Assembly (NCBI RefSeq): GCF_020745735.1
Contig: NC_083449.1
Span: forward strand, 4,376,923-4,440,922
Direction of reading: 5' to 3'
DNA: 64,000 nt
Source: Hemiscyllium ocellatum
Lineage: Eukaryota
Shown piece by piece: positions 3,015 to 41,514 of this stretch. Every line of letters starts with the position of its first letter. The first letter of the stretch is position 1. The notes below the pieces were generated by a model. That model made no database searches. It worked only from the letters and a program-made list of their open reading frames with translations, and was not told the origin of the DNA. The position numbers and the translations under genes were made by a program.

Positions 3015-3092
3015 AAATACCCTAATGATTATTAACTGACTGCCACACTGATCAGTTTAATCTTGCCTAACTTGGCATATGTTGATTTACAG

Positions 3093-18585: not shown

Positions 18586-18712
18586 ACTTCCTTGGTGGTG
18601 TTTGACTCTTGGTTTGAATATATCTCTCTGGAAATAGAGCTCAGTGTGAGTCTGACTCAATCCACTATGTGACTGGAAAGGATGTTCTTCACTCTTGATA
18701 GCAGTAACAAAC

Positions 18713-18820
18713 CTGCTGTTTATTCGAAGCAGCTGGTCACACTTGGTTCTGTACCGAGGGAATATTACATTGTCTTGGTCCTTTGAGTACTTGCCTGGAG
18801 GAAGACAGAGGAGATACCTC
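18713..18820 (-). other. 108-nt exon-like module, distal type
   Basis: ttgatttcCAG acceptor; donor CAG|GTTTGT (weakened). Confidence 0.5.
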
Positions 18821-18892
18821 CTGGAAATCAACATCAGTTGTGATTGGCAACATCAATGGAACATTCAGTTAGAGATCATTGATTTTTTTTGT

Positions 18893-18961
18893 TCAACGCC
18901 AGCAATTTAAACAGAACCACGGGTCTGATTCCACTCCTGCTCTGAGCTGCTCCTTGTCCAT
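18893..18961 (-). CDS. Candidate 22-aa small ORF MDKEQLRAGVESDPWFCLNCWR
   Basis: AAAATGG start context, open to TGA; paralogs differ mostly by synonymous changes. Confidence 0.35.
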   Translation of the reverse strand: MDKEQLRAGVESDPWFCLNCWR

Positions 18962-19371
18962 TTTTTTCTTAAAATTCTAAAACCCATTGAGTGAGATTCA
19001 GAAACTAAACAACACCCACACAGCTCCATGAATGGGGCCACCTGATGCAAGCAAGTATGTGGATATGTGAGTTTAGTTATTGATCTATACCTGTCTGTTC
19101 CTGCTAGGTTGCGAATTCCAGATACCCACCAATCTCTGCATGAACAACATTTTTCCTCATTTATCATCCAATCCTATAGCCACTTAGCTTGAATCTGTGA
19201 CCCCTGGTTTTTGAACTCTCTGCCAAAGAAAATAGGTTCTTATCTATTCTAATGTCTACCTCTCAATAATTAGTTAAAAATCACTCAACAGCAGGTTATA
19301 GTTCAACAGGTTATTTGGAAGTGCATGCTTTCAGAGTGCTCCTTCTTCATCAGCTAGCTCACTATTTAGTA

Positions 19372-19607
19372 CTGTAGACCCCCCCCCCCCCCCACCCCGT
19401 CCCAATGGGGGATACATTCCAGGACCTATGGAGGAAACCCAAATCTGTAGATAGGTGTGAACCCATTAATTTAAATGGAAATATACGTTCCCGGCAACCT
19501 CCTCGTCCCTTGATCTGAAACATTCCCTTTTATATGCTCGGACGACAGTAAACCGCAGGTCAGTGAAACTGGGATAATCGGACCTAGGGATATGGGGGGT
19601 CACCCTG
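19372..19607. mobile_element. Tigger/pogo-like non-autonomous DNA transposon (MITE)
   Basis: Flanked by TA on both sides; ends CTGTAGACCCCC...GGGGGATACATTCCAGGACC and GGATATGGGGGGTCACCCTG resemble Tigger/MER2-type termini. Confidence 0.6.
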
Positions 19608-19609
19608 TA

Positions 19610-20324
19610 TTCCTTAATCATGGCACCTCTGTTCCAAGGAACACAACCCCAACCTCTCCTGATAGCCACAATTCACCAGCCCTGGCAACATTCTAGTAAA
19701 TCTCCTCTGTACTCTCTCCAGAGCAATGACGTCCTTGCTATGATGTGGTGACCCAGCTGCACACAATACTCCTGCTGTAGCCACCAGTTCCTCATACATT
19801 TTCATTGTTATTTCCCTACATTTCTGTTCCATCCCTCTGCCAATCAAGGAGAGAATTCCATGTGCCTTCCATTCGACCCGACCCACTTTAGGAACCTGTG
19901 CACTTGCACACCAAGGTCTCTCACTTAACCTGTCCCCTCAGTATATTCCCATTTATTGTCTGACTTCCAAATTGCATTCCCTGATACTTATCAGAGCTGA
20001 ATGCCATCTGCCACTTTCCTGCCCACTCCACCAAACCAACTATATAGGTTTGGAGTTTACAGCTATCCTCTATATGCCATTTTTTGTGTTGTCTGCAAAT
20101 TTCACATATCTGCCCACCATATACAACTCCAAATCATTAATGTATAAAACAAATGGCAGTGGTTCCAACACTGAGCCATGCAGACTACTGCTTGTAACAG
20201 CTTTCCATTCACAATGGCCACCATTGACCATTATCCTTTCTTTCCTGTGACTGAGCCAACTCTGGATCCAATTCAACACATTACCCTGTATCCCATGGTC
20301 TTTTGCTTCTTGGACCAGTCTGCT
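19610..20324 (-). mobile_element. Old CR1 RT fragment
   Basis: ORFs with SVLEPLPFVLYINDL, KFADNTK and LERVQRRFTRMLPG. Confidence 0.8.
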
Positions 20325-22785
20325 GTTATGATGCTGCTCCTTTAACAAGCTTATAAAAGACACCGGCTCCAAAAAGACTGAGTCAATGGGTTTTAGGGCT
20401 ATTTTGACTTTAGCTGACAGGTAAAGCCTCAGGCAAAAAGCTTCCACATTTTTAATAAGTGGCTCAGTTTTCCCAGCTCAGCTTTTCTCTGGTTTGATTT
20501 GGTTTTTGGCTGTCTGCTATTGACTGAAAGCAGTCAGGCAGTTGAAAAAGCTGCGGAACCCAAAGAAGCAGGTCCATGATGGTACTCTATCTCTCTCTCT
20601 GACATCTCTCTTGTAAGACCCTGTGTTTGATTTTAACTTTTTTGTGCCAAGGGGTGCTTATTGGGATTGTTTTAAATTTTGGAAACACCATCATTAATTA
20701 AGTTGGTATAATCAGTTGGGTTTTGGATTTGTTAAGTAATTCAATATTCTGTTCTCTTTTGGTAATTTTTGAAATCAATACTGTTTTGTTTAAAACTACG
20801 TTGTTTGACCAGCTGCATCCCTCCTGGAATATCTTCATTACACCGGCTTAAAACAACTAGCAAAGTCAAGGTCTGGGTTACTTTCTTGAAAGGGGGTCTG
20901 GCCTTTTCCATAACGGATTGGGGGCTGTTTGCAGAGTTTTATTCTGTAGTGTAGTTCTGATTTGGGATTCAGGTTGTTGAACTTGAAGATAGCGAGTGCC
21001 AAATCTTAGTGTCTTATTCTGGGTGTTAAATTTAATTGGTTTTAACGGTGCTCGGAAAAAGTGAGGACTGCGGATGCTGGAGATCGGTGACAAGAATGTG
21101 GTGCTGAAAAAGCACAGCAGGTCAGGCAGCATCTGAGGAGTAGGAGAATCAATGTTTTTGGGCATCAGGCCTTCATCAGGAAATAGTGCTAGGGATAGAA
21201 ATGGCTCTGAGTCATCAAGAGTTTTCTGTGGGGTGGAAGAAGTGACTTCAGATTTTTGCAAAAAAGTGATTAAGGCCAAGTTGCTGGAATTAGCCGACAA
21301 GCTGGGGCTCAACCGGCCTCCATCCACAAGGAAAAGGGCGATAATGACAGTAATAGCTCAACAGATAATGGCTGGAAATGCCATCAGAATCTTTAGAGTG
21401 GCTAACATTCAATTGAAAATGAAGCAACTTGAGTTAGAAGCAAAAATCAAGGAAAGGGCAACAGAAACGAAACAGTTTGAATACCAATTAAAAGCAGAAG
21501 GGAGGGAGGAGAGAGAAAAGGAAGAAAGAGGGAGTTTGAACATCAGAAATTGGCACTTAGACAGGAGTTCAAAAGTTTGCTTCCTGAATTAATGAGAACT
21601 CATGTGGAAGGGCAGAGTGTTGAAACAGCAAGACTGGCATCAGAAATGGCTGATGATTGAGTTGATCGATAAATCAAAATTAGGCTGCCAAAATCAATTT
21701 CACTCTGAGGGATAATAATTGTGGATAAGAGAAATTCTCACGTGGAAAGTAAAAAGTAGATCTCTGTGAAGATCATAAGGAAAGAGAAGTGAAAAAGCTC
21801 TGATGTTTTCAATAAAGTAGGCCACGTGAAATCAGTGTTGGTGGGTTAGGAAATGCACTGAGAAGCCAGATGTAGGAAAACAGGATAAACCAGTGAATTT
21901 TGTTGGAGTGGTAACAGAGAGCACTGTGGAGACTAGAAAGCTGTACCAAGATGTACAAGCTGGTCAGAGGTTGCTTATAGAGGAAGTGCCAGATCTTCTT
22001 AAACCATACACCATGAAGCTAAAGTTTACTCACATGGGTCAGAAGCAGCAGGTAAAGAGGTAACAATACTAAGAGATAGAAGGATCCTCTCAATCTGTGA
22101 TGCTAAAAGATGTGGATATATGTACCTCTGAAGGACTATTGCCAGAAAAGGTATGAGTAACAGGAATTCACATAGAGACAAGAAATACACAATTGTTAGA
22201 TGTGAGGTTAGAGTGCCTAGTGAAGAGGGGGAAAGTCATAGTCGGTGTACTAGACAAACGCTTAGCTCCAGGAATACAATTTGTTGTTGGTAGTGATGTT
22301 GCTGATTCACCGGTAGGAGTGCTGCCGACTGTGGCTGAAAAGCCAATGGAAATTCAGGCAACTGAACTATTGCAGGATGTTTCCTGACTGTGTGGTTACG
22401 AGGTCACAATGGCACCGGTTGAAACAGAAAAGATCAAAGAATACAGATAAGGAAGTTGAAGGGAAATTAGCAGATTAGCAAATTAGTTTGATCAGATGGC
22501 TGAGACAAACCAGGAACAGAGATGACAAAGCAGACATCTTTAGCTCAGGTAAATTAACTGAGTTACAGCAAAAAGACCAAAATTTAAAGCAATTGTATCA
22601 AAAGGCATACACAAAATGAATCCAAATGTATCCCTGAATGTTATTATCTTTAAAAATGATGTCTTAAATGAGGAAATGGAGAACATCACATTCAGGCAGA
22701 TGAGAAATGGGCAGAAGTTTATCAAGTTGTATTGCCAATGGGTTATAGATAGGACAAATTGCAAGTAGCACATGAGGTACCTGCA
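20325..22785 (+). mobile_element. Decayed Gmr1-like Ty3/Gypsy element (5' LTR about 20325-20915, tRNA-Pro-type PBS, gag/protease remnants)
   Basis: LTR starts TGTTATG, followed by TTGGGGGCT PBS-like sequence; gag KAKLLELADKLGL; homologous to 37373-39810. Confidence 0.72.
21053..21182. mobile_element. Penelope-type terminal repeat (pLTR-like) inserted in the Gypsy element
   Basis: AAAGTGAGGACTGCGGATGCTGGAGATC...GGCATCAGGCCTTCATCAGG; absent from the paralogs at 38150 and 60460. Confidence 0.65.
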
Positions 22786-24581
22786 TAGATTGTGTGTTTG
22801 AAATTCACATTATTTAATTGTCATCTCTGTATGTGACAACTATTCAGTAAAGGATTAATTCTGTCCTTCTCAGTCACACACAAACTCAGTGGAAATATGA
22901 TTCATCCCGGTTGGAGAATTTGAGCTATTGCAGAGGCTGAATAGGCTGGAACTGTTTTACCTGGAGAGTGACCTTATAGAAGTTTATAAAATCATAAGGC
23001 ACACGGAGAAGTGGAGGAACCTGGTAAAATTACAACATTTAAAAGGCATCTGAGTGGGTATAATAAGAAAGTCTTGAAACTTGCCCTTAAATACTTAGAT
23101 TAAATGTAATGTTGAATTATAGAACACAAGAGAATAAACAGGACAGGCAGGGAGGCATCAGGCCACAAAAGGGGAACCTAGAATGTACAGAAGTTTTAAA
23201 AAAAATCTGTTCTCACCAAGTGAGAACAGGATGCTCTCAAGCAATTAAGAACATTTGCCTTAACATCAATGAATCTGTGTAAAAAGGATATAGAGTGATA
23301 ACATTCACGGATGTTAGCTTTTGAAATTAATGACAATGTTTGATCGTGATCTCGGAAACTCGGTGTCGTCTCAGAAGCATGCCAAAAGCCTTGTAATAAA
23401 CAGTCAGGTCCTGTCAATTATAACGGATTCTTATTGTGTGAGAGAGAGTGAGTGAGATGAAGCCATCACTGATTATGAAATGCAGACTCTAAAATGTAAC
23501 CTTTCAGCCTCAGGTACAGAATGATTTTATGTTTAAGATAAAAAGCAGGAGTCTGCTCCTAGATTAAAAATTATTCTAAACTGATCATTGAAGAGATTCT
23601 GACACAATCTGTCAGGAAGCCATTTTATGGTCAAAGCTTGCCCTCCTCACTAAGATGCCATTTTGTAAAACAATGATATCTGACATGCAAGCTGTGCAAG
23701 GTTACCTTATGCCCTCTCCCACTTAGTTTAGACAGGGACTTACCTCACCAACAGGTACTGACTGGGCTGGATTTGTTTTCCCACCTGATGGATGGCTAAG
23801 GGCCTACAGGAGTGATCAGTAAAGCGCACAGACCTGTTAATTAACTTCTCTTCCTTACAAATTATTGCCTTTCCACTGTCTGTCTAATTAAGAACATGCA
23901 GCGTTTATTGTAAAATTTTGTAAAAAGGAAGCCTATTTGAGACAGAAGAGTGGAGTAGTGTGCGAGGGCTCTTAAAGGAAGAGCTGGTATCCTACATTTC
24001 TAAGGTTTTAGGTGTCAATGTTACGTTGTAACAGTGATGCTATTGATAAATAAAGAGCAAGGCTAAAATTGAGCTAAACTGTTTGTAAGAGGTTTTTATT
24101 CCAGACTACCAAACAGTACGATTTTCAGAACGAACCAGGATCTCCAGGACAAGGCTTATAGGTCTGAGTCCACAAGTGATTCCCAGGGCCATCTCAAATC
24201 TGTACTTTAACAATATGAATAGGAACGGTTTAGACGGAGATGGGGAAGTGCTGGCAAATGGGACCAGATTAGGTTAGGATATCTGGACAAGTTGGACCGA
24301 AGGGTCTGTTTGCATGCTCTCTGTCTCTGTGACTCAACGACTCTTCAGTAACTCTTGCCTTGTCGGTGAGCAGTTTCCCTCCATCTCTGTACTTAAGCCC
24401 TATTTCACAGATGGTCATTGAAATGATGCAACAATGTTGCCTATTTGACTATCTTCATTGTAACTTTGAAAATGCTCTTAATAACTGCAGATTTTAATGC
24501 TATTCCTGAACGTCTATTTTAGATGAGAACTCAGTATATCTACCTCCAACACTGGTGTGTAAACATCAATGGGCTACATAC

Positions 24582-24688
24582 CTTCCGTTTGTTAGAGACA
24601 GCTGGTTACTCTGTGATTTGAACTGAGGAAGTTTTACAGCGTCTTAGTCTCTCAGGTGTTTTTCTGAAGGAAGACACAGGGACACCAC
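24582..24688 (-). other. 107-nt exon-like module, proximal type
   Basis: ttgatttgTAG acceptor and AAG|GTATGT donor. Confidence 0.55.
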
Positions 24689-25220
24689 CTACAAATCAAC
24701 AAGAGGCTAGTCTGGCAATATTGAACTGATCATTGTCACATTTATTGCATATTAAGTATGATGGTTTTTTTTATTAAACCAACAACTTTACCAGAACCAC
24801 GGATCTGATTCCATTGTTGCCCTAAGCTGCTCTCTGTCTGGGAATTGTTTGTTTTTCTTGTGATTCGATACCAGTTGATTTGGAGATGCTAGTGCATAAT
24901 GTTACACATCAAGTGCTTCAAAAAAACCTGTTGGACTATAACCTGGTGTTGGGATTTTTAACTTGATATCAGTTGAGTGAGATCCAGAAACTGAGCAACA
25001 ACTACCCAGCACCATGAATGGGAATACTCAACCACCAGCACGCTTACACAGTTCAATATCCAACTCCCTGTTCGAAAGAGGAAAAACGGCGCTAATTGTA
25101 ATGTTTTTACAAGACTATCATATGCCTTCAGTTGGTCCACCTAAATTCAAGAAAGAGCGGAAAACACATTGAAATTAAAACAGGGTTCGTTCAGAGGATT
25201 GGAAACCGCATGAATCTCCC

Positions 25221-25530
25221 TCAGTAGGCCCACACACAGCCCGAGAAAGGCCTCTCTCTTCCCCCCAGCCCGCTCACTCCAAGTTCCGGGACCAGTTCCT
25301 GCTCCGCTCGGCCTCTTACAAACAGCCCCCGGTTCTCCCTGAAGTCACCCCGAATCAATCCCGGTCTCGGAGCCCCCTCTGTGTCCCAGGCTCCCATCCC
25401 GATGTGCTGCTGGAAGGAGGCTGCTGTTCCCTCGCTTCCCTGGGCGCTGATCTCTCCATTGCGGTCTGTTTCAAACAAACCTCTTGCACTCACTGAGTAA
25501 ATGCTCCTCAATGGCAGCGCTGGGGGAGGG
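25221..25530 (-). other. Putative first exon (donor TCA|GTGAGT, GTGAGT at 25488-25493) and GC-rich intron start of a gene divergent to H4
   Basis: Consensus donor just downstream of the NRF1 motif; the block is conserved in four copies. Confidence 0.5.
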
Positions 25531-25712
25531 TCTCACGCATGCGCTCCTCCACTCAGGAACAGTCAGCTTTGGGGTGAAAACTATCAGTCCCAGATACAGT
25601 TGGGGCGGGAGTGAGCTGGATGATCTGTCTGTCACTCAGTTTCCCTCCGGACCCGCCTCTCACTCTCTGTCAGCTCTTTCTCAGTCAGGTCGGGCCGGGC
25701 TGTATAAAAAAG
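25531..25712. promoter_or_regulatory. H4 promoter with bidirectional-promoter motifs
   Basis: NRF1-like ACGCATGCGC 25535-25544, ZNF143-like AACTATCAGTCCCAGA 25579-25594, GC box 25602-25610, H4 site II-like TCAGGTC and TATAAAAA 25703-25710. Confidence 0.7.
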
Positions 25713-25756
25713 GAAGGGGCGGCAGCTCGGCTCTCATTCGGCAGCGATTGGAGTGA

Positions 25757-26077
<321 letters not shown>

Positions 26078-26108
26078 GGGTAAAGCGACCCTTTTCCAGC
26101 GAACCAAA

Positions 26109-26150
26109 GGCTCTTTTCAGAGCCACCCAAACCCTCCGAAAGTGAGCGGG
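26109..26150 (+). promoter_or_regulatory. Histone 3' stem-loop and U7 downstream element (H4)
   Basis: GGCTCTTTTCAGAGCC ACCCA followed by a purine-rich GAAAGTGAG. Confidence 0.95.
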
Positions 26151-26791
26151 GACCTGAGGTCGTGAGAGGCAGCGCATTGAGGGAACTGTTATTGTGGCAG
26201 GTTATTTCACGTTTATCGCGTCTTTTAAAATTATCTCAGTTTCGAAAATGTACCAGTACCGTGTTTTGCGGTACGGCAGAGAGCATTCGGAGTGGACTGT
26301 TCACTTTGTTGCTGTTTACGGTGGCAAATGATTTTACAATTGTATGTACACCTGTAGTGTGGATGAGGTTATTCGGCCAATTGAGGCTACTGTTGTGTAA
26401 GCTGATGTAAAGAATCCCATCTTTGTAATAGTGAGGTGTACGTGCATCAGGGGGTGGAGGGAAGAATGAACCGAGCAGAGAATGAAATGAAGAGGGAAAC
26501 GCTGCAGACAGTGGGAGGAATCAGCTTATTGATGTATTAACGGAAACGTGAAGCCAAACCCGATCGGGAACATCCGTGACACTATTCTAGACTCATTGAT
26601 CAAACATAAAGGTCACTCAGGCAGTGACCCTAATGAGGAATAAAGTATCCAGACACTCTTACAATTTTCCTCTGCTGCCACCGACAGTAACAATATCCAA
26701 TAACAAGAAGATTGAAATGTAGCAATGTTAGGTAAAACGGCAAGGGTTCTACACATTATAAGGAAAGTAATTCAACCCGACAGAGAATTCA

Positions 26792-27497
<706 letters not shown>

Positions 27498-28267
27498 CCA
27501 AACAAAGCAGTATGTTTTACCTGAAAAATGAAGTACAAAAAACTGAGCAAGTTGAAAAAATATTAAGACCCATGTTATTTACTTTTAGTTTACAAATGTG
27601 GACTGTTCTCACACGGTCTTACTCTCCCTCATTTGCCGATCTGTAACTGTCCATTTCTGATCTTGAGAGTGGGTTATTTTCTAAACCTTAAGAAGCAGAG
27701 AAACAACAGGTCAAACACCGCAGTCTGCAACCTGTCTTTCCTTTTCACATTTCAATCCCACCCCGATATGCTGATAAAACAGCACACAGCATTCTTCCGG
27801 CTCAGCATCGAGGGCGAACACGTTTATTTTTCAGGCGATATTTTAAAGCTGACCTCCCTTATCGATCTCGATCAAATTCAGCAAAAGCTCCACGTTTCTG
27901 TCCGGTAGCTGTGTTGGTGTTCTCTTGGTTCGCTTTGGAATTTCTCACCAACGGCATGAAGTGTTATTTTGCAGAGCGAGAAGTCGGCTCAAACCCGCGC
28001 ATTGGAAATGTAAAGTAAATCAGAAGGGAAAATGCATCAACGTGGGGGTGAAAGACGTGGGCATTTTTCTGTCAGGGGTAAACAAGATTAAAAATGACTC
28101 ACTGGCGCCTGATCTGCTCTCGTCCACCCCACTCCCGAATAATTTGCAAAAAAGCACTTATTAACTCAGAAACATATAACGCGATAAGTTAAATTGCTCT
28201 ATCAATAATCACGAACTAAAACAAACAACCGAAGGAATGGTTCAGCTATCTTAGGGACGTTGAGGAT

Positions 28268-28283
28268 GGCTCTTATAAGAGCC
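28268..28283 (-). promoter_or_regulatory. Histone 3' stem-loop (H2B copy 1), variant loop TATA
   Basis: GGCTCTTATAAGAGCC. Confidence 0.88.
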
Positions 28284-28324
28284 TTTGGGTTGTGAATGTG
28301 TGTGTTTCAGTGCAGTGCGGTCCT

Positions 28325-28705
28325 TCACTTGGAGCTGGTGTACTTGGTCACTGCCTTTGTGCCCTCCGACACGGCGTGCTTGGCCAGCTCCCCGGGCAAC
28401 AGCAGCCGCACAGCGGTCTGGATTTCCCGGGAGCTGATGGTGCTGCGCTTGTTGTAATGGGCCAGGCGGGAAGCCTCCCCCGCGATGCGCTCGAAAATAT
28501 CGTTGACGAACGAGTTCATGATGCTCATGGCCTTGGAGGAGATGCCGGTGTCGGGGTGAACCTGCTTCATCACTTTGTAGATGTAGATGGAGTAACTTTC
28601 TCTCCTGGACCTTTTCCTCTTCCTGCTGCCCTTTGCTGGCGCCTTCTTAATGATTTTCTTCGCGCCCTTCTTGGAGGTTTGCTGGGCTTTCTTCTCATCA
28701 GCCAT
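28325..28705 (-). CDS. H2B: Histone H2B
   Basis: [17 protein letters not shown]...[25 protein letters not shown]...AVTKYTSSK, 126 codons, intact. Confidence 0.98.
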
Positions 28706-28756
28706 CGTCCTACTCACTTTCAGAAACAGAATAAGGTACAGTGGGCTCGGAGCTCC

Positions 28757-28872
28757 CTCTTTATAGACTGACGGCGTAAGCAATGCTAATGAGGGATGGG
28801 GAAAGGCTTGCCTTAGATTGGGTAGTTTACCAAGAGGCATTCCCAAACACGGAGTCTCTCTGATTGGTTAGT
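28757..28872 (-). promoter_or_regulatory. H2B promoter (two CCAAT boxes, octamer ATTAGCAT, TATAAA)
   Basis: Motifs read directly on the minus strand upstream of the H2B ATG. Confidence 0.8.
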
Positions 28873-29690
28873 GAGATCCAATGTGTATCTGCAACGAAAC
28901 GTGAAGTGGATGGTGATTCTGTTCCTGTCAGTCTGACTGAGGGAGATTTGTTTTGTGTCTGCGACACAGAAAGTGACGGTGGTATTGGCTCGGTTTCCTT
29001 TTGCTTGTTGTGATGCTGATGTGTTTCTAGTTCCGCATGTCTGTTCTGTTCCTCTGTATAGGATGGAATTAACACAGAACTTTTCACTGTGTGAAAAAAA
29101 GCTCTCATCCATTCGAAATTGCGATTACATTTGCTGTCAAGCTTCACATACCACTGGAACCTGACTGAATGTTTTCTCCACTTGGGGTTCATCCAACTCA
29201 TTCTCAATTGCACGGAGTTGGAGAAATTATAAGAAAAAGTTTATATGGAGTACTTTTGTTGAGTCATATATTGATGAATATATTTCTGAGATCTTGACTG
29301 ATAACTATGGGCCCAGAAACGTATCGATAACTGGGTGCTTTGAAAGTACCTGCAGTGTACTGAACCACGTTGCTGCACTTTTCAATTAGGCGTCTTGCAG
29401 TTTCATGCAGGGATTTATAACTTTTCTCCGTCTTACGCGAATGCCTGTTAACCAGCAACTGTCAGCATGTTATACATATATGTGTCACTTTAACTTTATA
29501 TCTGTCATGTTCTAATTTACACATTTTGCATTAACTCAACATCTGTCCAATGAGGCTCTGGTCCTCCATCTAATAGTCAGTGTTATTTCAAGACCGATTT
29601 TATTCTGTAACCATCAAACACTGATGTGAGCGGTAAAACGTTACACTATTTGCCAGCCATTTAGAAATATTCCTCCAATCTGTGCCCCCA

Positions 29691-29837
29691 GGAGAAAGTG
29701 AGAACTGCAGATGCTGGGGATCAGAGGCTTATGCCCAAAACGTCGAGATGAAGGGCTTATGCTTAAAACAACGATTCTCCTGCTCCTCGGATGCTGCCTG
29801 ACATGCTGCGCTTTTCCAGGACTACACTCTCGACTCC
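29691..29837. mobile_element. Penelope-type terminal repeat with internal inversion and two decayed hammerhead motifs
   Basis: GAGAAAGTGAGAACTGCAGATGCTG followed by the opposite-orientation GGCTTATGCCCAAAACGTCGA-GATGAAGGGCTTATG; paralogs at about 42110 and 52323. Confidence 0.6.
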
Positions 29838-30539
29838 AATCTGTGCCCGTCTGTTTCTGAGATGTATTTTTGTAAACTCTACTTCACAATCTTAACATGT
29901 CAGTATGTTACTGGACTGTAACTCAAACCTTCCAAAGTGTACCTTGTTGCTTTACTCTGTCGGTGTGAAATTTGAAAGTACCAGGTACCACTTTGGACAG
30001 ACTCAGGTAGGACTCACTACCCTCCACTCCCATGCCCCATGAATATCAGCTTCTGCAAATTGAACTTGGGTTTGTATTTATAACTGCAGCATTTTGATAA
30101 AGGATAATGTACATTGTTACTGACAATATCTGCAACATCACTGCGGATGTTACATTGGCTAGAAACTGGCATAAACAATCAATAGTTGTATTATATCCTA
30201 ACGATTTATTGCTTTGCAACTGACTCAGTATTTCATTCTATAAATGCCAGTTTATTCTTTCTAATCTTGTATTTACTCAGTATCAGTCAATTACTGGCAT
30301 GACATAGAGCAAATATCTCAACATCTCAAAGTTTCTGATGAAATGGGTGGTTTTTTTTCCACTCCATCCTTGATATATCTGGGTAACTTATAACTGAATC
30401 GATCAGTGTGTGATCTGTGAGCACACACACATCAGTAAGTTAAAGATAAAGTGTATAGTGAATGATGCTGCAGATACAGTGTCTCTGCTGTAGTTATTAA
30501 TTTCTTTCAATCTTCTGTCACTTTAAATATCTCAAAGCA

Positions 30540-30952
30540 GAAGACCATAAGAAGCTTGAGAATTCTGTGACATTTCTATCTGCATGTGTGTACTCTGTCC
30601 TGAGAAGAGATCACAAAGACTTTAGTTATGGTCTTCATCTCATTTTGATGTTTAGTGCCCATAACCAAAGACTCCCTGATGTATCAAAAAAGATATATGG
30701 CTACATTAGCATAAAGTAAGCTGATAACTCAACCCTAACAGCTTTCTGTGGAACAGAATAAGGGGACAATGTTCTGCATTGCTTTCTTAGACAGAAGGCT
30801 TCCTGTTCAAAACTGTGTCCCTCACTCGGGATTCTCTCATGAGCAGTGACATAACCCCAGCATCAACTCTGTCAACTCCCTTCAGATCATTTTTATTTTG
30901 CTCTAAAGGTCATCCATTGTTCTTCAAAACTCCAATGAGAATATACCCAACC
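30540..30952 (-). mobile_element. Old CR1 3' end
   Basis: AGACCATAAGA tail and similarity to 43712-44130 (AAACTCCAATGA). Confidence 0.5.
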
Positions 30953-30974
30953 ATTTTATACGTATAATGAGAGC

Positions 30975-31990
30975 ATATCAATCTGCATCTCTAAGCTTCT
31001 GCTATTTGAATATGAGGGTACAGGGATCACACTTTCCCAGTAAGATTCTGCTATGTGCATACCTATGTGAATTTCTCACCCTAGACCTGTTGGTTTCTAC
31101 TGTGTGAAAACAACAGTTTCTACTCTCAAATGGGATAGTTTAATCAATCGTCCATGTCAGTTTCTGTATTGTTAAAATGTGAACGTAGTTATCAATGTCA
31201 ACCTGCCATCTTCTGTGAAGTGAACATGTGGGGGTCCATATTGAAATGTACCTGTTGCTTTCAGCGACAGGAATGCATGAGTTTAGTTATCATTATTTTC
31301 CTGTCAGTTTCTTCGATGTGAATGAATTGGTGTAGTTATCCACCTGTACTGATGAAGGGCTTTTAAACAAAACGTCGATTCTTCTGCTCCTTGGATGCTT
31401 TCTGGCCTGTACCTTTCCAGTACCACACTCCTGACTCTAATCTCCAGTATCTGCAGTCCTCAGCTTTGCCTATCCATTTGTACCTGTCAGTTTCTGATCT
31501 GTGAATATGGAAGTGTCGTTATTGATCTGTCCATCAGTTTCTTTAATTTGAATATGACTGTCTAGTCATCTATCTCTCCCTGTCAGTTTCTGTGATGTGA
31601 TGACAGTCCAATTATTTATCTGCCCTTGTCAGTTTCTGCTGTGTGAATATGAGAGTGGCATTATCAGTCTCTACCTGTCAGCTTTTGCTATGTCAATGTG
31701 ATTTTAGTTATCAATCTGCCTCATTAGGTTCTAGGTGAATGTAAAAATGTAGTTATCAATATATACCTGTAGATTCTGCTCTGGGAATGTGGGTGTGTTA
31801 TCAAAATGTACCGGTCAGTTTCTGCAACGTGAATGTTTGAGTGCAGATTTCAATCTGTATCAGACAGTTTCTGCAATCATCAGTCTATCCCTGACATATA
31901 GTTGAAGCTGAATGGATGAGTGCATCTGTACCGGAAAGTATCTGTACCTGTCAGTTTGTGTTCTGTGAATAAGTGAGTGTACTTACACAT
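30975..31990 (-). repeat. ~47-bp minisatellite array (reverse) with a pLTR-like insert at about 31350-31470
   Basis: CCTGTCAGTTTCTG repeats. Confidence 0.72.
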
Positions 31991-32094
31991 TTGTCTCTGT
32001 TAAACATGACACTTGCAGAAACAGCAGGAGCTCTATTTACTTCAAATCTCTATTGCTCAACATGAATAAGATTTTATCTATTGCCATCCATGTC

Positions 32095-32425
32095 AGGGTG
32101 GCATGGTGGCACAGTTGTGCCAGGGACGCAGATTCAATTCCAGCCTTGGTTCATTATCTGTGTGCAGTTTGCACCTTCTGCCAGTGTCTGCATAAGTTTC
32201 CTCTGCGTGCTCTAGTTTCTTTGCATGGTCCAAACATGTGCAGGTTTGCTGGAATAGCCATGGTAAATTGTCCTGTATTATTCAAGGATGTGCAGTGTCA
32301 GTGGGTTAACTGTGGTAAACGTGAAGTTATGGGGATAGGGTGGGGTCTACGTCTATGTGGGATCAGATTTGGAGAGTTGTTGCAGGGGACTGGGCCAAAT
32401 TACCTCTCTCTGCACTGGAGAAATT
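32095..32425 (+). mobile_element. Old diverged HE1/V-type SINE
   Basis: GGCATGGTGGCACAG..GATTCAATTCCAGCC..TGTGTGCAGTTTGCAC..GCCATGGTAAATTG. Confidence 0.7.
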
Positions 32426-33792
32426 CTATGTATTGTAAATGAAAGTGAGACTTTTGCTATCATTAATCAATCTCAACAGTGTAAAGCAGTTTGGATAATT
32501 TCCACAACTTTTATTCAATGGCACAGTTTTTGATTAAGTTATATTCGGCATCTGTATTTGAATTTATTGTTCACATGTTTATAAACAGACCACTTTATGA
32601 GAGCTTTCTCACTGTGTGTCCAATCACCTCTGGTATCTGTCTGAATGTGTACCTCTTCATGTCAATATTTGATTTCCCTTTGTACAGGTATGATGTTCTG
32701 GAAAGTGTAGGGGGGTGATGGCTGTTCATGCTACATTCCCCTGAGAATCCAAGTTTCTGGTACTGAGACTGGCTCGAATGCAACGAGGGGTACATCGGCT
32801 TCCAAGAGATCAATTGTGTGAGGGGATTCTGTCGTCCGAGGTACAGACAGACGTTTCTGTGGCCAGCAGCGATAAAGCAGAATGGTGTTGGTTCCGTGGT
32901 GCCAGGATCAAGGGTGTCTCAGAGAGGGTACAGAATGTTCTCACGGGTGAAGAGGGGACAGCAAGAGGTCATTGTCCACATTGGAACCAACAACATAGGA
33001 AGGGAAAAGGTTGTGATTCTGAAGGGAGATTACAGAGAGTTAGGCAGAAATTTAAAAAGGAATTTACAAGCTAGTGAGAGCAGGAATAGGAGGATAGAAC
33101 AGATGAATGCATGGCAGAGGAACTGGTGCATGGGGAAGGATTCATATTTTTGGATCATTGGAATCTCTTTTGGGGTAGAAGTGACTTTTATAAGGAGGAC
33201 GGATTGCACCTAAATTGGAAGGGGACTAATATACTGGCAGGAAATTTCTTCGATCTGCTCGGGACAATTTAAACTAGTAAGGTGGGCGGGGGGAAACGGG
33301 ACCACGGACGTAGTGAGGAAAGAGATCAGTCTGAGACTGGTACAGTTAAGAACAGAAGTGAGACAAACAATCAGGGCAAGCAGGGACAAGGTAGGACGAA
33401 TAAACTAAACTGCATTTACTTCAAGGCAAGGGAAGTAAATGCAGGGAAAGCAGATGAACTTAGGGCATAGTTAGGAACATAGGACTGGGATATCATAGCA
33501 ATTACAGAAACATGGCTCAGGGATGGGCAGGATTGGCAGCTTGATGTTACAGGATACAAATGCTACAGGAAGGACATAAAGGGATGCAAAAGAGGAGGGG
33601 GTGTGGCATTTTGAGAAGGGATAACATTACAGCTGTGCTCAGAGAGGATGTTCCTGGAAATACATCCAGGGAAGTTATTTGGGTGGAACTGAGAAATAAG
33701 AAAGGGATAATCACCTTATTGGGATTGTATTATAGACCTCCGAATAGTCAGAGGGAAATTGAGAATCAAACTTGTAAGGAGGTCTCAGCTAT

Positions 33793-35005
33793 AACCACGG
33801 TAGCGTGGCCGAGTGGTCTAAGGTGCTGGATTTAGGCTCCAGGCATTTTAATTTCAGTAAAGTGTTCGACAAGGTTCACCATGGGAGCTGATTAGCAAGG
33901 TTATATCTCATGGAATACATTTGAATACAGAACTGGCTCAAAAGTAGAAGACAGAAGGTGGTGGTGGAGGGTTGTTTTTCAGACTGAAGGCCTGTGACCA
34001 GTGGAATGCCACAAGGATCGGTGCTGGGCCCTCTACCTTTTGTCATTTACATAAATGATTTGGATGCGAGCATAAGAGGTACAGTTAGTAAGTTTGCAGA
34101 TGACACTAAAATTGGAGGTGTAGTGGACAGCGAAGAGGGTGACCTCAGATTACAATAGGATCTGGACCAGATGGGCCAATGGGCTGAGAAGTGGCAGATG
34201 GAGTTTAATTCAGATAAATGCGAGGTGCTGCATTTTGGGAAAGAAAATCTTAGCAGGACTTATATACTTAATGGTAAGGTCCTACGGAGTGTTGCTGAAC
34301 AAAGAAACCTTGGAGTGCAGGTTCATACCTCCTCAAAAGTAGAGTCGCAGGTAGATAGGATAGTGAAGAAGGCGTTTGGTATCTTTTCCTTTATTGGTCA
34401 GAGTATGGAGAACAGGAGTTAGGAGTCATGTTGCGCTGTACAGGACATTGGTTCGGCCACTGTTGGAATATTGCGTGCAATTCTGGTCTCCTTCCTATCG
34501 GAAAGATGTTGTGAAACTTGAAAGGGTTCAGAAAAGATTTACAAGGATGTTGCCAAGGTTGGAGGATCTGAGCGATAAGATAAGCTGAACAGTCTGGGGC
34601 TGTTTTCCCTGGAGCGTCGGAGGCTGAGGGGTGACCTTATAGAGGTTTACAAAATTATGAGGAGCATGGATAGGATAAATAAGCAAAGTCTTTTCCCTGG
34701 GGTCAGGGAGTCCAGAACTAGAAGGCATAGGTTTAGGGTGAGAGGGGAAAGATATAAAAGAGACCAAAGGGGCAACCTTTTCACATAGAGGGTGGTTCGT
34801 GTATGGAATGAGCTGCCAGAGGATGTGGTGGAGGCTGGTGCAATTGCAACATTTAAGAGGCATTTGGATGGTTATATGAATAGGAAGAGTTTGAATATGG
34901 GTCGGGTGCTGGCAGGTGGGACTAGATTGGGTTGGGATATCTGGTTGGAATGGACGGGTTGGACGGATGGGTCTGTTTCCATGCTGTACATCTCTATGAC
35001 TCTAT
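33793..35005 (+). mobile_element. Chimeric retrocopy: tRNA-Leu 5' half fused to a CR1 RT/3' end
   Basis: Inserted between host CR1 bases GCTAT and CTGTAAGAATAAT, which are contiguous in the CR1 copy at 8293-8310; ends in a TCTATGAC-type tail. Confidence 0.8.
33799..33848 (+). pseudogene. tRNA-Leu(UAG) 5' fragment (acceptor 5' strand, D arm, anticodon arm, part of variable arm)
   Basis: GGTAGCGTGGCCGAGTGGTCTAAGGTGCTGGATTTAGGCTCCAGGCATTT matches vertebrate tRNA-Leu-TAG; T arm and 3' acceptor are missing. Confidence 0.9.
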
Positions 35006-35902
35006 CTGTAAGAATAATAGGGTGGTTATGGTAGGGGATTTTAACTTTTCAAACATAGACTGGGACTGACATAGTGTTCAAGGTTTAGATGGAGAGCAAT
35101 TTGTTGAGTGCGTACACGACAATTTTCTGATTCACTATGTGGATGTATCTACCAGAGAAGATGCAAAACCTGACCTACTCTTGGGAAACAAGGCAGGGCA
35201 GGTGACTGAGGTGTCAGTGGGTGAGCACTTTGGGCCAGCGACCATAATTCTATTAGATTTAAAATAGTGATGGGAAAGGATAGACCAGATCCAAAAGTTG
35301 AAATTCTAAATTGGAGAAAGGGCAATTTTGACGGTATTAGGCTCCTACCAGTCCATGCCGACCAGATATCCCAACCCAATCTACTCCTGCTGCCAGCACC
35401 TGGCCTATGCTGTACATCTCTATGACTCTGAGACATAAGGGGCAGTTTTATTTTTAAACAAAGTGATGGTAGCAGTGGGACACACTGCCTGGGGTGGAGA
35501 TGGAGGAAGATACAACAAGGGTATTGAAAGGACTTTTAGGTAAGCAAATGAATATGTAAAGACTAGAGGATTATGGACCAAGCCAGGGAGAAGGGATTAA
35601 TTGCATTTTGGTGGCATGTTCGGCACAACATGGTGGGCCGAAGGACCCATTCCTGTCCGTACTGTTCGATGTTCATATTTTAATGCAGTGTATATTTTGG
35701 ATGAGAATGCATTCAAGTTGATTGAAACTGGGTAGGATGCATTTAGAATATAGATTAAAAAATATAAACTTCAGTTTCCTTGGTGGTGTTTGACTCTTGG
35801 TTTGAACATATCTCTCTGGGAATGGAGCTCAATGTGAACCTGACTCAATCCACTCTGTGACTGTGGAAAGGATTGTTCTTCACTCTGATAGCAGTAACAT
35901 AC

Positions 35903-36010
35903 CTGCTGTTTGTTCGAAGCAACTGGTCACACTTGGCTCTGTACCGAGGGAATATTACATTGTCTTGGTCCTTTGAGTACTTGCCTGGAGGAAGACAGAA
36001 GGGATACCTC
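35903..36010 (-). other. 108-nt exon-like module, distal type
   Basis: aatcaCAG acceptor and CAG|GTATGT donor. Confidence 0.55.
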
Positions 36011-36068
36011 CTGTGATTGGCAACATCAACGTAACATTCAGTTCCTCATCATTAAGGTTTTTTTTAAA

Positions 36069-36137
36069 TTAAAGCCAGCAATGTCAACCGAACCATGGGT
36101 CTGATTCCACTCCGGCCCTAAGCTGTTCCTTGTCCAT
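36069..36137 (-). pseudogene. Small-ORF module MDKEQLRAGVESDPWFG* (premature stop)
   Basis: The first 16 codons encode the same protein as 18893-18961 despite five third-position changes. Confidence 0.45.
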
Positions 36138-36385
36138 TTTTTATTAAAATAGTAAGCCCAAAGGAATGAGATCCAGAAATGAAACAACACCCGTACAGCT
36201 CCATAAATGGGACCTACCAGATGCAAGTGGGTATTTGGATATGTGAGTTTAGTTATTGATCTATGTCTGTCAGTTTCTGCTTGGAGAATGTGAGAGTGTA
36301 GTTATAAAACTGTAACATTCATTATATGGTCAATATATTTACATATTCACACTGCAAAGACTGGCAGGGTCCAATTGATAACTAT

Positions 36386-37372
36386 AGAATCATAAAAATA
36401 ATACAGCACAGAGGGGGCTACTTAGCCGTCTTATCCATGCCAACCCAAAAACACCCAAAGGCCCTTTCTCATCCCATCTTCTTGCCGCAGCCCGTAACCT
36501 TGCAGTTAACGGAACTGGGAGTGCAGTTCCAGAGATTTTTGTTTAAAAGAGTTTAGGGTCTCTGCCTCCAGCACCAAATCAGGCAGGAAATTCCAGATAC
36601 CCACCACTCTATGCATAAAAAAAATTCCTCACGTATCATGTAATCCTACACTACTTAGTTTGAATCAATAATCCCTTGTGTTTGAACTCTCTGCCAAAGG
36701 AAACAGGTTCGTCCTGCGTACTCTAATCTCTCCCTCTCACTATTTCGTGAAAAATCACACAACACAAGGTTATAGGTATATTTGGAAGCACAAGCTTTCA
36801 GAGTGCACACAATACTCCAGTTGTAGCCTCATCAGTGCCTTATATGGTTTCATTGTTATATCCCTACTTTTCAATTCCATCCCTCTGCCTATGAAGGAGA
36901 GCATTCCACGTGCCTCCTTCACAACTCCATCTACCCATAGTGACCCATACACTTGCACACTCACCCAGCCCCTCAGTATATTCCCATTTACTGTTTGACT
37001 TCCCAAAATGCATTCCCTCACACTTCTCAGAGCTGAACTCCATCTGCCATTTTCCTGCCCACTCCACCAAACCATCTATAATACTTTTGGAGATGACAGC
37101 TATCTTCTACACTATCCACTAAATAGCCAACTTTTGTGTCATCTGCAAATTTCACAAATCTGCCCATCACATTCAAGTCCAAATCCTTAATGTATAAAAC
37201 AAACAGCAGAGGTCCCAACACTGAGCTATACAGAGCACCACTTGAAACAGCTTTCCATTCACAAGAGCAGCCATCAACCATTACCATTTGTTTCCTGTTA
37301 CTCAGCCAACTTTGCATCCAATTCAACACATTACCCTGTATCCCACAGCTTTTACTTTTTGAACCAGTCAGC
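36386..37372 (-). mobile_element. Old CR1 RT/3' fragment
   Basis: SSVLGPLLFVLYIKDL, KFADDTKVG and WQMEFSSEKC. Confidence 0.82.
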
Positions 37373-39810
37373 TGTGATGCTGCTGCTCCTTTAACAAGCC
37401 TATAAAAGACACAGGCTCTGAAAAGTCTGACTTGATGGGTTTTAGGGACATTTTAATTATAGCTAATAGATAATACCTCAGGCAAAAGGCTTCCACATTT
37501 TTAAAAAGAACACTTGTACAATGAAAGGGGAGTGGTCCAGTTTTCCCAGCTCAGCTTTTCTCTGGTTTGATTTGGTCTTTAGCTGTCTGGCCATTGACTG
37601 AAAGCAGTCAGGCAGGTCAAAAAGTTGCTGAACCCAAAGAAGCCAGTCCATGCTGGCACTCTCTCTCTCTGACATCTCTCCTGTAAGACCCTGTGTTTGA
37701 TTTTATCTTTTTTGTGCCAAGGGGTGTTTGTGGGGAGTATTGCAAGTATTGGGAACAGCATCATTAAGTTGGTATAATCTGTAGGGTTTTTGGACAGGTT
37801 AAGTTATTTAGTATTCTGTCCTCTTTTAAGACATAGGAACATTTGTTTGTGTTTCATTTGATAATCTTGTAAATCAGTTCTGTTTTGTTTAAAACAACGG
37901 GGTTTGACCAGCTACATCACTCCTGGAACATCCATGTTACACCTGCTTAAAACAACTAGCAAAGTTCGGGTCCGGGCTACTTGAAATGTTATGAGGGGGT
38001 CTGGCCTGGTCCATATCAGTTAGGGGGCTCTTTGAAGGATTTATTCTGTTGTTATGATTTGGGATTAGGGTTGTTGGACTTGAAGGCAGCGAATGGTAGG
38101 TGTTAGTGTCTTTTGTTCCAGGTTTTGAATTCAGTTGGTTTAAACTGTGCTTCGGAGAGCAACAGCTCTTTCACTCAACCAGAGTTTTCTGCAGGTGGAA
38201 GAAGTGATTTTAGGCCTTTTACAAAAGGTGATTAAGGGTAAGCTGCTGGAAATAGCAAACAATCTGGGATTGAGGCTGTGTCCTTCCATGAGGAAAGGAG
38301 AGAAAATTACAGCAGTAGCTCAGCATTCACGCTTGTTGAAAACACCATCAGAATCTTCAGAGATGGCTAACATTCAATGAAAAATGCTGCAACTTGAGTT
38401 AGAGGCACAAAACAAGGAGAGGGCAACAGAAATGAATTTTTTTTTGAACTATGATTAAATGCAGAAGAGAGAACGAGAGAGAGAGAGAAAAGGAGAGAAA
38501 GGAAAGGAAGAAGGAGAGGGAGTTTGAACATTGGAAATTGGCATTTAGACAGGAATTCAAAAATTCACTTCCTGAAGTAGTGAAAACTCATGTGAAAGAG
38601 CAGAGAGTTAAAACGGCAAGACTAGCAGCTGAAACGGCTGATGATTATGAGTTGATCAAAGTTTGACTTCTAAAACCAATTTCAATCCATGAGAGATAGA
38701 AGTTGAGGATAAGAGAAATCCTCACATGGAAAGGAAATGATAGATCTCAGTGAAGGTCGTAAGGATGACTTATCACAAGTTAAAAAGGAAATCCTTGAAG
38801 GGGAAAGGGAAGTTAAAAAGCTCTGGTGTTTTCCCTGCAATAAAGTAGGCCACATGAAATCATGTTGGTGGGTTAGGAAAAACACTGGGAAGCCAGATGT
38901 AGGAAACAGGAGAAGCCAATGAATTTTGTTAGAGTGGTAACAGAAAGCACAACAGAGATTCGAAAGCTGCACCAGAATGTACGAGCTGGACGGAGGTGCC
39001 AGATCTTCTTAAACCATCCATCTCTGAAGGTAACGTTTTAATCGCATGGCTAGGAGGATCAGGTAAAGTGGTTACAATATTAAGAGATACAAAGATCCTC
39101 TCAATCTGTGATGCTGAAAGATGAGGTGATACATACCTCTGAAGGACTATTGCTCGAAAATGTACTAGTAACGGGAATTCATGTTGTGAGAAGTGAGGTT
39201 ATAGTGTCCAGTGCAGTGACGAGTGGAGAAGTTGTGGTAGGGGTAGTGGACAAACTCTCAGCTCCGGGAATACAATTTGTCCTTGCTAATGATATTGTTG
39301 ATTCACTGGTAGGAGTGCTGCTGTTGAAAAGCCAGTGAAATCTCAGGCAACTGAATTAGTGCTGGACATATAACCTGGGCATTTTCCAGACTGTGTGGTG
39401 ACAAAGTCATCAGTTGAAACAGGAGAGATCAAAGAGTACAGATAAGAAAGTTGAAGTGAAATTAGCAGAGACCCTGGTTGATCAGATGGTTGAGACAAAC
39501 CGGGAAAAGATAGATGACAAAGCAGACATCTTTAGCTGAGATAAATTAACCAAGTTACAGCAGAAAGATGAAAATTTAAAGGAATTGTACCAAAAGGCCA
39601 ACACAGAAAAATAATATGAATATATCCCTGCATAATATTATATTAATAATAATGTATTAATGAGGAAATGGAGACCATCACACATTCAGGCTGATGAGAA
39701 ATGGACAGAACTGTATGAAGTTGTATTGCCAGTGGGTTATGGAAAGGAGGTGTTGTGAGTAGCACATGAGCTACCACTAGGTCATCATTTAGGAGCGAGA
39801 AAAACTCAGA
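37373..39810 (+). mobile_element. Decayed Gmr1-like Ty3/Gypsy element (LTR 37373-38018, PBS, gag with SCAN-like and CCHC motifs, protease remnant)
   Basis: TG...CA LTR followed by GGGGGCTC; FKNSLPEVVKTHVKEQRVKTARLAAETADDY; CFPCNKVGHMKSC; VTILRDT. Confidence 0.78.
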
Positions 39811-40383
39811 CTTTTGCAGAGACTGTTTGGAAATCACATTACTTAATTGTCGTCTCTGTCTGTGATGACTATTCAGTAAAAGATTAATGCTACCCTTCTC
39901 AATTACAGATAAACTCCATGTAAATGTGCTTCACTTGGGTTGGAGGATTTGAGTTAGCAGTAGAGGCTGAATAGGCTGGAGCTGTTTTCCCTGGAGAGGG
40001 ACCTTTATAGAGGTTCATAAAATCATGAGCAGCATGGATAAGTGGTAGAGGCTGCACCGAAGGGTCTCTTTCCGTGCTGTACATCTCTATGATTCGATGG
40101 CTGTAAATAATAACACTTGTTGGAAATGGGGTGATGTGCACTGAGAATGGAGAGAGAGAGAAACTGCTGATGAGCACAGTTTCCCTCCATCTCTGTACTT
40201 AGCAGCTACCTCACAGATGGTTGTTGAAACTATGTAACAGTATGATCTATTTGTTTATTTACATTGTAGAAAATGTTCTTATTAAAAGCAGATTTTAATG
40301 CTGACCCTGAGTGTCTATTTTGGATGAGGATTCAGTTTATCTATCTTTAAAACTGAATCTTCAAATGTCAACGGGCTACATAC

Positions 40384-40490
40384 CTGCTGTTTGCTCGAGG
40401 CAGTTGGTCCGACTTCCCTTTGAACCGAGGAAGTATTACAGTGTCTTAGTCCCTCAGGTATTTGTCTGGGGGAAGATAGATAGACACCAC
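40384..40490 (-). other. 107-nt exon-like module, proximal type
   Basis: ttgattaaTAG acceptor and CAG|GTATGT donor. Confidence 0.55.
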
Positions 40491-40632
40491 CTATTAATCA
40501 ACGTGAAGCGAGACTGGTAATATTGATCAATGCTGAAAATATGTTGCTGGAAAAGCGCAGCAGGTCAGGCAGCACGCAAGGAACAGGAGATTCGACGTTT
40601 GGGGCATAAGCCCTTCTTTAGGAATGTCATAT

Positions 40633-40728
40633 TCATCGCATATTCGTTAGGATAAGCCAGCAACTTAAACAGAACCACGGATCGGATTCCATTGTTGCGC
40701 TGAGCTGCTCTTTGTCTGGAGATTGCAT
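40633..40728 (-). CDS. Candidate 31-aa small ORF MQSPDKEQLSATMESDPWFCLSCWLILTNMR
   Basis: ATG-to-TGA open frame homologous to the 18893-18961 module. Confidence 0.3.
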   Translation of the reverse strand: MQSPDKEQLSATMESDPWFCLSCWLILTNMR

Positions 40729-41029
40729 TTATTTCTCATATGATTCGATACCAATTGAGTGAGATGGAGAAACTGAGCAACTGCACAGCTCCATGAGTAG
40801 GACTACTCACCACCAGAATGCTAACACAGTTCAAAATCCAACTCCCAATACACTACCTGTTGGAGAGAGAAAAAACGGTGATATACCTTATTTTTTCCCA
40901 AGACACACTCCTTTTACAGGAGTATCCCATTCCTACAGTCGGTCTGCGATTCCGATATTGACTGCACAATCTCAACAAACAATCGGAAACAATGAAATCT
41001 CAACAGAGTTCAGAGGATTGTAAACTCCA

Positions 41030-41508: not shown

Positions 41509-41514
41509 TGAACG

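Follow-up and report, generated by a model that had tools for sequence, protein, structure and literature searches.

What is the G-rich sequence that stands head-to-head with a histone H4 gene of Hemiscyllium ocellatum, the epaulette shark, and that recurs in the same cluster where H4 is absent? The window analysed here, a stretch of 64,000 nt (NCBI RefSeq assembly GCF_020745735.1, contig NC_083449.1, positions 4,376,923 to 4,440,922 of the forward strand), is a part of the histone cluster of this species rich in transposable elements, with one H4, two H2A and two H2B genes. A G-rich block of 350–430 bp is found four times in it, three times on the minus strand (units u1, u2 and u3) and once inverted, and each block is accompanied by exon-like modules. 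The original prediction had taken these units for a multi-copy spliced long non-coding RNA (lncRNA) or micropeptide gene sharing the H4 promoter. The lncRNA part of this proposal we retain, in view of a promoter-like start, splice sites and two separate peaks of conservation; the micropeptide part we do not. Probably, the shark histone cluster contains a spliced lncRNA gene that is lineage-specific and multi-copy, and of which every unit represents one copy. The unit is best read as specific to carpet sharks, placed head-to-head with H4 in one case and retained where H4 was deleted, and, judged from its sequence, it is probably transcribed and spliced.

A G-rich block shared by old paralogs and two genera

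The four copies of the block, together with the promoter-like core of u1, are located as follows; donor positions are given as last exon/first intron nucleotide.

25216–25580, minus strand: G-rich block of u1, with the candidate first exon and the start of intron 1 within 25216–25513
40987–41427, minus strand: block and core promoter of u2, without H4; donors at 41341/41340 and 41196/41195
63294–63734, minus strand: block and core promoter of u3, without H4; donors at 63648/63647 and 63503/63502
2289–2681, plus strand: inverted, promoter-less block copy; GT of the first donor deleted, two 1-nt deletions
25506–25580, minus strand: putative constrained core promoter of u1, with an NRF1-like site (25535–25544), a CT-box (25519–25530) and a CCAT initiator-like element (25506–25518)

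The block indeed repeats at all four predicted places. Its GC-rich parts in u1 (25216–25513), u2 (41063–41362) and u3 (63370–63669) are 97–98% identical to each other, and the inverted copy (2289–2582) still reaches 95.6%. Related loci outside the window were reached via automated gene models that translate the block or the distal exon described below. Three models of Chiloscyllium punctatum (P0001–P0003) led to the loci L001–L003 and one RefSeq model of C. plagiosum (P0004, LOC122544537) to L004. Assembly gaps (N) are present in L001 and L004; a gap of this kind may hide the block that one would expect upstream of the module in L004.

The core block (u1 25216–25560) is 96–97% identical in every pairing, within as well as between H. 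ocellatum and C. punctatum, and this extends to paralog lineages with flanks of 60–62% identity. Pairings with the inverted copy yield 88–89%, solely because a retroelement replaces the first ~50 columns there. The sequence just downstream of the block behaves very differently: identity is 88–89% among u1, L002 and L003, 76–84% between these and u2 or u3, and 60–69% in pairings with the inverted copy or L001. Between u1 and L002 of C. punctatum the block is 95.6% identical vs 84–87% in the 2-kb flank. A 40-bp identity profile places the limits of the block at ~25580 and 25216, with a rise from 78% to 92–98% at about 25580. A further ~28 conserved nt are present in u2, u3, the inverted copy, L001 and L002 and are deleted in u1.

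Shared insertions define at least three old paralog lineages, namely u1 with L002 and L003, the inverted copy with L001, and u2 with u3. The first of these is recognised as one lineage because of a SINE-like (short interspersed nuclear element) insertion in module 1, CCAACACCAGGTTATAGTCCAACAGG... at 24880–24975 on the minus strand, which is common to u1, L002 and L003.

This pattern bears on the idea that a dispersed transposable element has given rise to block and modules. Such an origin would fit a window in which LINE (long interspersed nuclear element) and SINE fragments are abundant, and an A-run and a T-run at the modules hint at old retroposon-derived material. However, throughout 140 kb of the window plus the related loci, every copy found is part of the duplicated unit, with order and orientation unchanged. 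Neither terminal repeats nor target duplications nor a tail mark the ends of the block, and its flanks can be aligned across lineages. Near-identical blocks within flanks of 60–89% identity are impossible by independent insertions. Over the window and these loci, the check for a dispersed transposon that had been proposed as a refutation speaks for the unit, and we regard a transposon origin as hardly credible.

On the sense strand the block has a GC content of 0.58–0.60 (0.60 in u1), a GC skew of +0.32, 15–17 G-runs (15 in u1) and two to three G-quadruplex (G4) motifs. The observed/expected ratio (o/e) of CpG is 0.51–0.54 vs 0.84–0.94 in the H4 gene. Classification of the block as a CpG island (GC at least 0.5, CpG o/e at least 0.6, at least 200 bp) fails on this ratio. 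In folding, neither strand was more stable than shuffled sequence (z of −0.14 and −0.11). At the gathering threshold, Rfam returned only the histone 3' stem-loops in the window, and even with E up to 10 nothing meaningful appeared in block or module.

All this is compatible with an alternative in which the block acts as DNA, as a promoter, an insulator, an R-loop- or G4-prone origin or a histone-locus-body seed of the histone cluster, any transcripts being by-products. The composition, the absence of a stable RNA fold or known RNA family, and a conservation that runs uniformly over the core promoter and ~330 nt irrespective of either donor all argue for it. We nevertheless regard a DNA-level element as unlikely, although it is the alternative that we take most seriously. 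The reason lies several kilobases away, in the exons.

Exon modules, splice sites and coding capacity

Six modules on the minus strand and an inverted one at 2850–3260 were found; a 21-nt anchor has six minus-strand matches vs 0 expected.

24582–24663, minus strand: proximal 82-nt exon (module 1) of u1, acceptor CAG, donor GTATGT; an alternative acceptor 25 nt upstream gives an exon start at 24688
18713–18794, minus strand: distal 82-nt exon (module 2) of u1, the second conservation peak
40384–40465, minus strand: proximal 82-nt exon of u2
35903–35984, minus strand: distal 82-nt exon of u2
62693–62774, minus strand: proximal 82-nt exon of u3
58207–58288, minus strand: distal 82-nt exon of u3, last exon bases CG and not AG
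3117–3199, plus strand: exon-like stretch in the inverted unit, 83 nt long, with CAA in place of CAG as acceptor
18588–18712, minus strand: conserved tail past the distal-exon donor of u1, either intronic or perhaps an extension of the exon, up to a SINE insertion

The predicted arrangement of two exon modules per minus-strand unit is borne out by all six exons, each of which measures exactly 82 nt and is framed by a pyrimidine tract, a YAG acceptor and a GT(A/T)TGT donor. For the first exon of u1 there are two candidate donors. The one at 25494/25493, which had been described as a consensus donor, does have a consensus intron side (GTGAGT, 25488–25493), but its exon side, TCA, is not consensus. 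The internal one, at 25349/25348, reads GTGACT in u1 and GTGAGT in the other copies.

The distal exon, 5–7 kb from the block, forms a second peak of conservation. Between u1 and u2 identity is 92–98% across 18864–18705 vs 73–85% upstream. In L004 of C. plagiosum this exon has one difference to u2 in 82 positions (98.8%) and two to u1 (97.6%), while its upstream flank is 81% identical to u2 and 91% to u1, and the 29 nt before the acceptor about 76%. The tail behind the donor is common to all module-2-type copies and shows 85–100% identity between u1 and u2. Besides, each module has an A-run behind its upstream conserved part (for instance 18880–18900, minus strand), and the module-2 copies of u2, of the inverted unit and of L001a and L001b have a T-run behind their tail (for instance 35700–35776, minus strand); parts of the module may be ancient retroposon-derived sequence.

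In the Chiloscyllium gene models the same sites are joined. The models chiPu_0020654 and 0022556 of C. punctatum leave the block at its internal donor (GGG/GTGAGT, equivalent to 25349/25348 of u1) and enter the module exons either at the CCAG acceptor or at one 25–26 nt upstream; P0002 takes the upstream alternative. LOC122544537 of C. plagiosum is modelled with canonical GT-AG introns of 17.4 and 12.5 kb and uses the donor of the distal exon, exactly as had been predicted for it. The evidence available to the annotators thus seems to favour splicing at the block and module sites, and the models suggest that the 3' ends differ between units. These observations stand against a DNA-level element: the second peak falls on a spliceable 82-nt exon 5–7 kb away from the block, six copies preserve the splice sites and the length of the exon, which the promoter-less one has lost, and gene models of two species splice at these very sites. 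A spliced RNA remains the explanation that we prefer.

Could this RNA be translated? According to this view, block and exons would be a 5' untranslated region plus small open reading frames (ORFs), or the 22-codon ORF of the module (18893–18961) would itself encode a peptide. Sense ORFs of 96–113 codons do span the block, and splicing at its internal donor, as in chiPu_0020654, would continue that frame in phase into a frame of the distal exon that is open; for C. plagiosum, RefSeq predicts a protein of 211 amino acids. However, the block carries 1-nt insertions or deletions in the inverted copy, L001 and L002. In the three sense frames, synonymous and non-synonymous changes stand at 9:25, 8:23 and 12:21, and 0, 4 and 3 changes, respectively, create a stop codon; none of the frames shows an excess of synonymous changes. 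Between the internal in-frame ATG and the internal donor all changes are non-synonymous, and L002 has lost the ATG at 25459–25457 (CAATGG), the start of a 34-codon ORF. Proximal and distal exon types have no open frame in common. The 22-codon ORF retains its ATG and stop in one copy only; it is truncated in u2, and u3, the inverted copy and every module-1 copy have no ATG for it.

Neither the ORFs of block and modules in the window nor the proteins of the four gene models match Pfam. A word search and HMMER against 1.84 billion representatives returned, as protein relatives, only the three C. punctatum models and one bacterial protein with immunoglobulin-like repeats (P0005), a spurious match. 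The unit shows no coding signal, and a protein-coding or micropeptide gene is very improbable. LOC122544537 (L004 10001–40597), whose 211-aa product has no Pfam domain and no relatives and in which the 82-nt exon is preceded by CAC and not by a CAG acceptor, is probably a spurious coding sequence on a non-coding transcript.

Other classes of RNA were searched for as well. Rfam detected no small nucleolar RNA (snoRNA) or microRNA (miRNA) in the introns, and ARAGORN no tRNA in the window. Stretches of the block complementary to the H4, H2A or H2B genes are at most 10 nt long, a 24-mer taken from the block had no match in a scan of metagenomes, and the literature on shark or histone-locus lncRNAs yielded nothing relevant. 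Short motifs were also read by eye as CTCF sites, proximal or distal sequence elements of small nuclear RNA genes, U7, the C/D box of snoRNAs or the cell-cycle genes homology region (CHR), in no case better than by chance.

The promoter-like core and the histone genes

The histone genes of the window and the neighbouring elements that matter here are the following.

25588–25611, plus strand: ZNF143-like core TCCCAGATACAG (25588–25599) and GC box (25602–25611) in the spacer between H4 and the block
25703–26149, plus strand: histone H4 gene, with TATA at 25703–25713, ORF at 25766–26077 and 3' stem-loop at 26104–26149
26789–27268, minus strand: H2A
28325–28846, minus strand: H2B
49493–49900, minus strand: H2A
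50956–51471, minus strand: H2B
1–2288, minus strand: retroelement with a 442-aa ORF (956–2284) without Pfam match and reverse-transcriptase-like fragments (313–980)

Upstream of the candidate first exon, the block contains an NRF1-like decamer, GCGCATGCGT, at 25535–25544, which occurs three times in the window, once per minus-strand block, with 0 expected. It is followed by the CT-box and by GCTGCCATTGAGG at 25506–25518, a YY1-like or CCAT element. These three motifs are present in u1, u2, u3, L001, L002 and L003. At its 5' limit, conservation reaches only 45–70 nt upstream of the CCAT element, so that the promoter under constraint is compact and located inside the block. The spacer on the H4 side is only 78–91% identical between units, which is the rate of the flanks, and its ZNF143-like motif and GC box are absent upstream of the L001 and L002 blocks. 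These two are probably upstream elements of H4, outside the constrained core. From what is established for the H4 promoters of vertebrates, a GC box at such a distance (~130 nt upstream) more probably serves H4 itself as an Sp1 site, and we read the one found here in the same way. All four kinds of motif reported earlier are thus in place, but the ZNF143-like match covers the TCCCAGA core only and the YY1-like match is weak and partial.

The proposal that the unit shares the H4 promoter holds as far as geometry is concerned, and for u1 alone: the TATA of H4 (25703–25713) and the putative minus-strand start (~25510) are head-to-head, ~200 bp apart. It is not supported for the elements themselves, as the constrained core is separate from the H4-side motifs, which drift at the rate of the flanks. 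H4 is absent from u2, u3, the inverted copy, L001 and L002, and Chiloscyllium copies also occur at loci without a histone gene nearby. L003 of C. punctatum adjoins an H4 promoter and yet has two large deletions inside its block. Therefore, copies can decay, and adjacency to H4 neither requires nor guarantees an intact block.

Two layers of duplication appear when the window is compared with itself. In the older one, 18588–25625 corresponds to 35776–41475 and 58082–63782, with 76–84% identity. The recent one has a period of 22.3–22.6 kb and about 95–96% identity; it pairs 26465–34598 with 49088–57237 and 34928–41686 with 57234–64000. By this comparison u3 is a recent duplicate of u2. Both u2 and u3 are without the 3.4-kb H4-H2A-H2B segment of u1 (25625–29049) and resume at the homologue of 29049–29266, which is most simply explained by a deletion in their lineage; in u2, a 28-nt junction stretch (41475–41503) stands in its place. 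Copies of the unit lie in duplicated histone segments, and the unit was kept in u2 and u3, from which H4, H2A and H2B were deleted; its amplification with the histone repeat and its persistence where H4 is absent, both predicted before, are supported.

A fairly intact LINE segment (44285–46417, minus strand) with the Pfam domains Exo_endo_phos_2 and RVT_1 (endonuclease and reverse transcriptase) belongs to the u2 unit only. The H2A at 26789–27268 (minus strand) matches the other H2A over residues 1–119 only, after which the frame shifts; it reads through its own 3' stem-loop (Rfam match 26791–26836), has G changed to D in the AQGGV motif and may be a pseudogene or a variant.

The inverted unit is a special case. 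Block and module are present, as had been predicted for an inverted one-module copy. Its promoter is missing, however, as the 5' end of the retroelement abuts the block head-to-head in its place and homology to the block stops at 2289. The retroelement occupies the place that H4 holds in u1. Only this copy combines the loss of the first-donor GT, the change of the acceptor from CAG to CAA, an 83-nt exon and two 1-nt deletions, and it has the most private substitutions (nine). It is probably a decaying copy.

As regards transcription, start site and choice of donor, we infer the following course. RNA polymerase II would start on the minus strand near 25505–25520, from the TATA-less core with its NRF1-like, CT-box and CCAT motifs inside the block, and in u1 this start would lie ~200 bp head-to-head from that of H4. 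The G-rich 5' segment would then be spliced from the donor at 25494 or at 25349 to the proximal and further to the distal 82-nt exon, and the transcript would continue into 3' exons specific to each unit.

Selection, gene conversion and known systems

Histone clusters are a classic case of concerted evolution and nucleate a dedicated nuclear body. The block might, therefore, have no function at all and be a hitch-hiker kept uniform by local GC-biased gene conversion in the histone array, as histone repeats generally are. Variation in the block is star-like and consists mostly of singletons. Private changes from AT to GC number 5 vs 25 from GC to AT, and because of this bias some force must maintain the GC-rich consensus, as a GC-restoring conversion would. 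Site 25531 is fixed differently in H. ocellatum and C. punctatum, across paralog types, and is a trace of homogenisation. Nor is there a slowdown of the block relative to its flanks between u2 and u3. Furthermore, mutation rates in sharks are very low, so that a difference of 3% might approach the neutral divergence between the genera, for which the epaulette genome paper gives no figure (PMC10587355).

On the other side, conversion cannot cross species, and identity across species and lineages equals that within species. The same boundaries are found in at least three old paralog lineages and in two genera; the same pairs of sequences diverge by 10–16% in both flanks of the block; and two separate peaks fall on the predicted first and distal exons. 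For these reasons pure conversion is disfavoured and a functionless hitch-hiker appears improbable to us. The honest reading of the sequence data is that uniformity of the block probably reflects a mixture of ancestral conversion and purifying selection.

Several observations weigh against a conserved, spliced lncRNA gene and have to be set beside those in its favour. Of the 36 private changes in the block 25 are from GC to AT, eight of them being CpG transitions, and with a CpG o/e of only 0.5 this suggests some germline methylation or decay. The blocks of u2 and u3 differ by 2.7% vs about 4% in the flanks, and this slowdown is not significant; since the block here differs as much as its flanks, recent constraint is not demonstrated. 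Conservation continues evenly for 130–210 nt past both candidate donors and leaves no simple exon footprint, and the proximal exon is conserved no better than its own flanks. The 3' exons of LOC122544537 have no counterpart in the window, and the Chiloscyllium models, being automated, provide predicted splicing only. Finally, selection and ancestral gene conversion are not cleanly separable without a value for the neutral divergence between Hemiscyllium and Chiloscyllium.

If the lncRNA reading is correct, the conserved 5' block and the distal exon would be the working part of the RNA. Because the unit was co-amplified with the histone repeat and kept uniform with it, this RNA would probably act at or for the histone locus. 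One might go further and see in block and distal exon a regulatory or architectural RNA specific to the histone locus, supplied once per unit and perhaps co-regulated with H4, which would help to order or tune the multi-megabase cluster of carpet sharks and would be co-amplified and uniform for that reason. This is a speculation, and in so specific a form an improbable one.

To our knowledge, histone repeats of vertebrates are not known to include, as a regular and conserved part, any RNA gene other than those of histones. What this window adds are units without H4, a decaying copy without promoter, a core that is separated from the H4-side motifs, and the peak on the distal exon. If functional, the unit would be a short, multi-copy and tractable case with natural knock-outs, such as the promoter-less inverted copy and the degenerate L003 of C. 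punctatum, and it could reveal by which route a lineage-specific lncRNA joins a gene array, and in what way the effects of selection and gene conversion come to be confined to its exons. Without a function, it would still illustrate cleanly that homogenisation can be very local in a repeat that otherwise drifts.

Among known systems, the divergent promoter lncRNAs of vertebrates, which start less than 1 kb from their partner at TATA-less promoters of the NRF1/Sp type, are similar in several respects. The putative start in u1 lies ~200 bp from H4 on the opposite strand, and the shark unit has an NRF1-like site, a CT/GC-rich core, predicted multi-exon canonical splicing and no coding potential. 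In contrast to them, it is multi-copy and was amplified together with genes in a tandem array, the uniformity of its first 330 nt goes far beyond what is usual in lncRNA exons, it is without the partner gene in three of four copies, and its core is distinct from the upstream elements of that partner.

GAS5 and other SNHG genes, non-coding hosts of small RNAs, can be compared in exon structure. The shark unit likewise consists of repeated exon-intron modules and has no ORF, and its exons are short, with poor conservation in one of them at least. Unlike in these host genes, Rfam detects no intronic snoRNA or miRNA, the conserved part is the region of the first exon and not the introns, and a 5'-terminal oligopyrimidine (5'-TOP) start is not evident.

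With the concerted histone repeats, for instance the newt clusters with transcribed satellite spacers, the unit shares a non-histone sequence that occurs once per repeat and is kept uniform. In the shark, however, uniformity is limited to two short segments, block and distal exon, in a unit that drifts elsewhere, it spans genera, and the segments concerned carry splice signals in place of satellite repeats. As an analogy for a DNA-level element, the bidirectional H3-H4 promoter of Drosophila, which seeds the histone locus body, is also a short conserved sequence at the H4 promoter and present once per unit. It has no sequence relationship to the shark block, which occurs away from H4 as well and extends into a predicted spliced unit.

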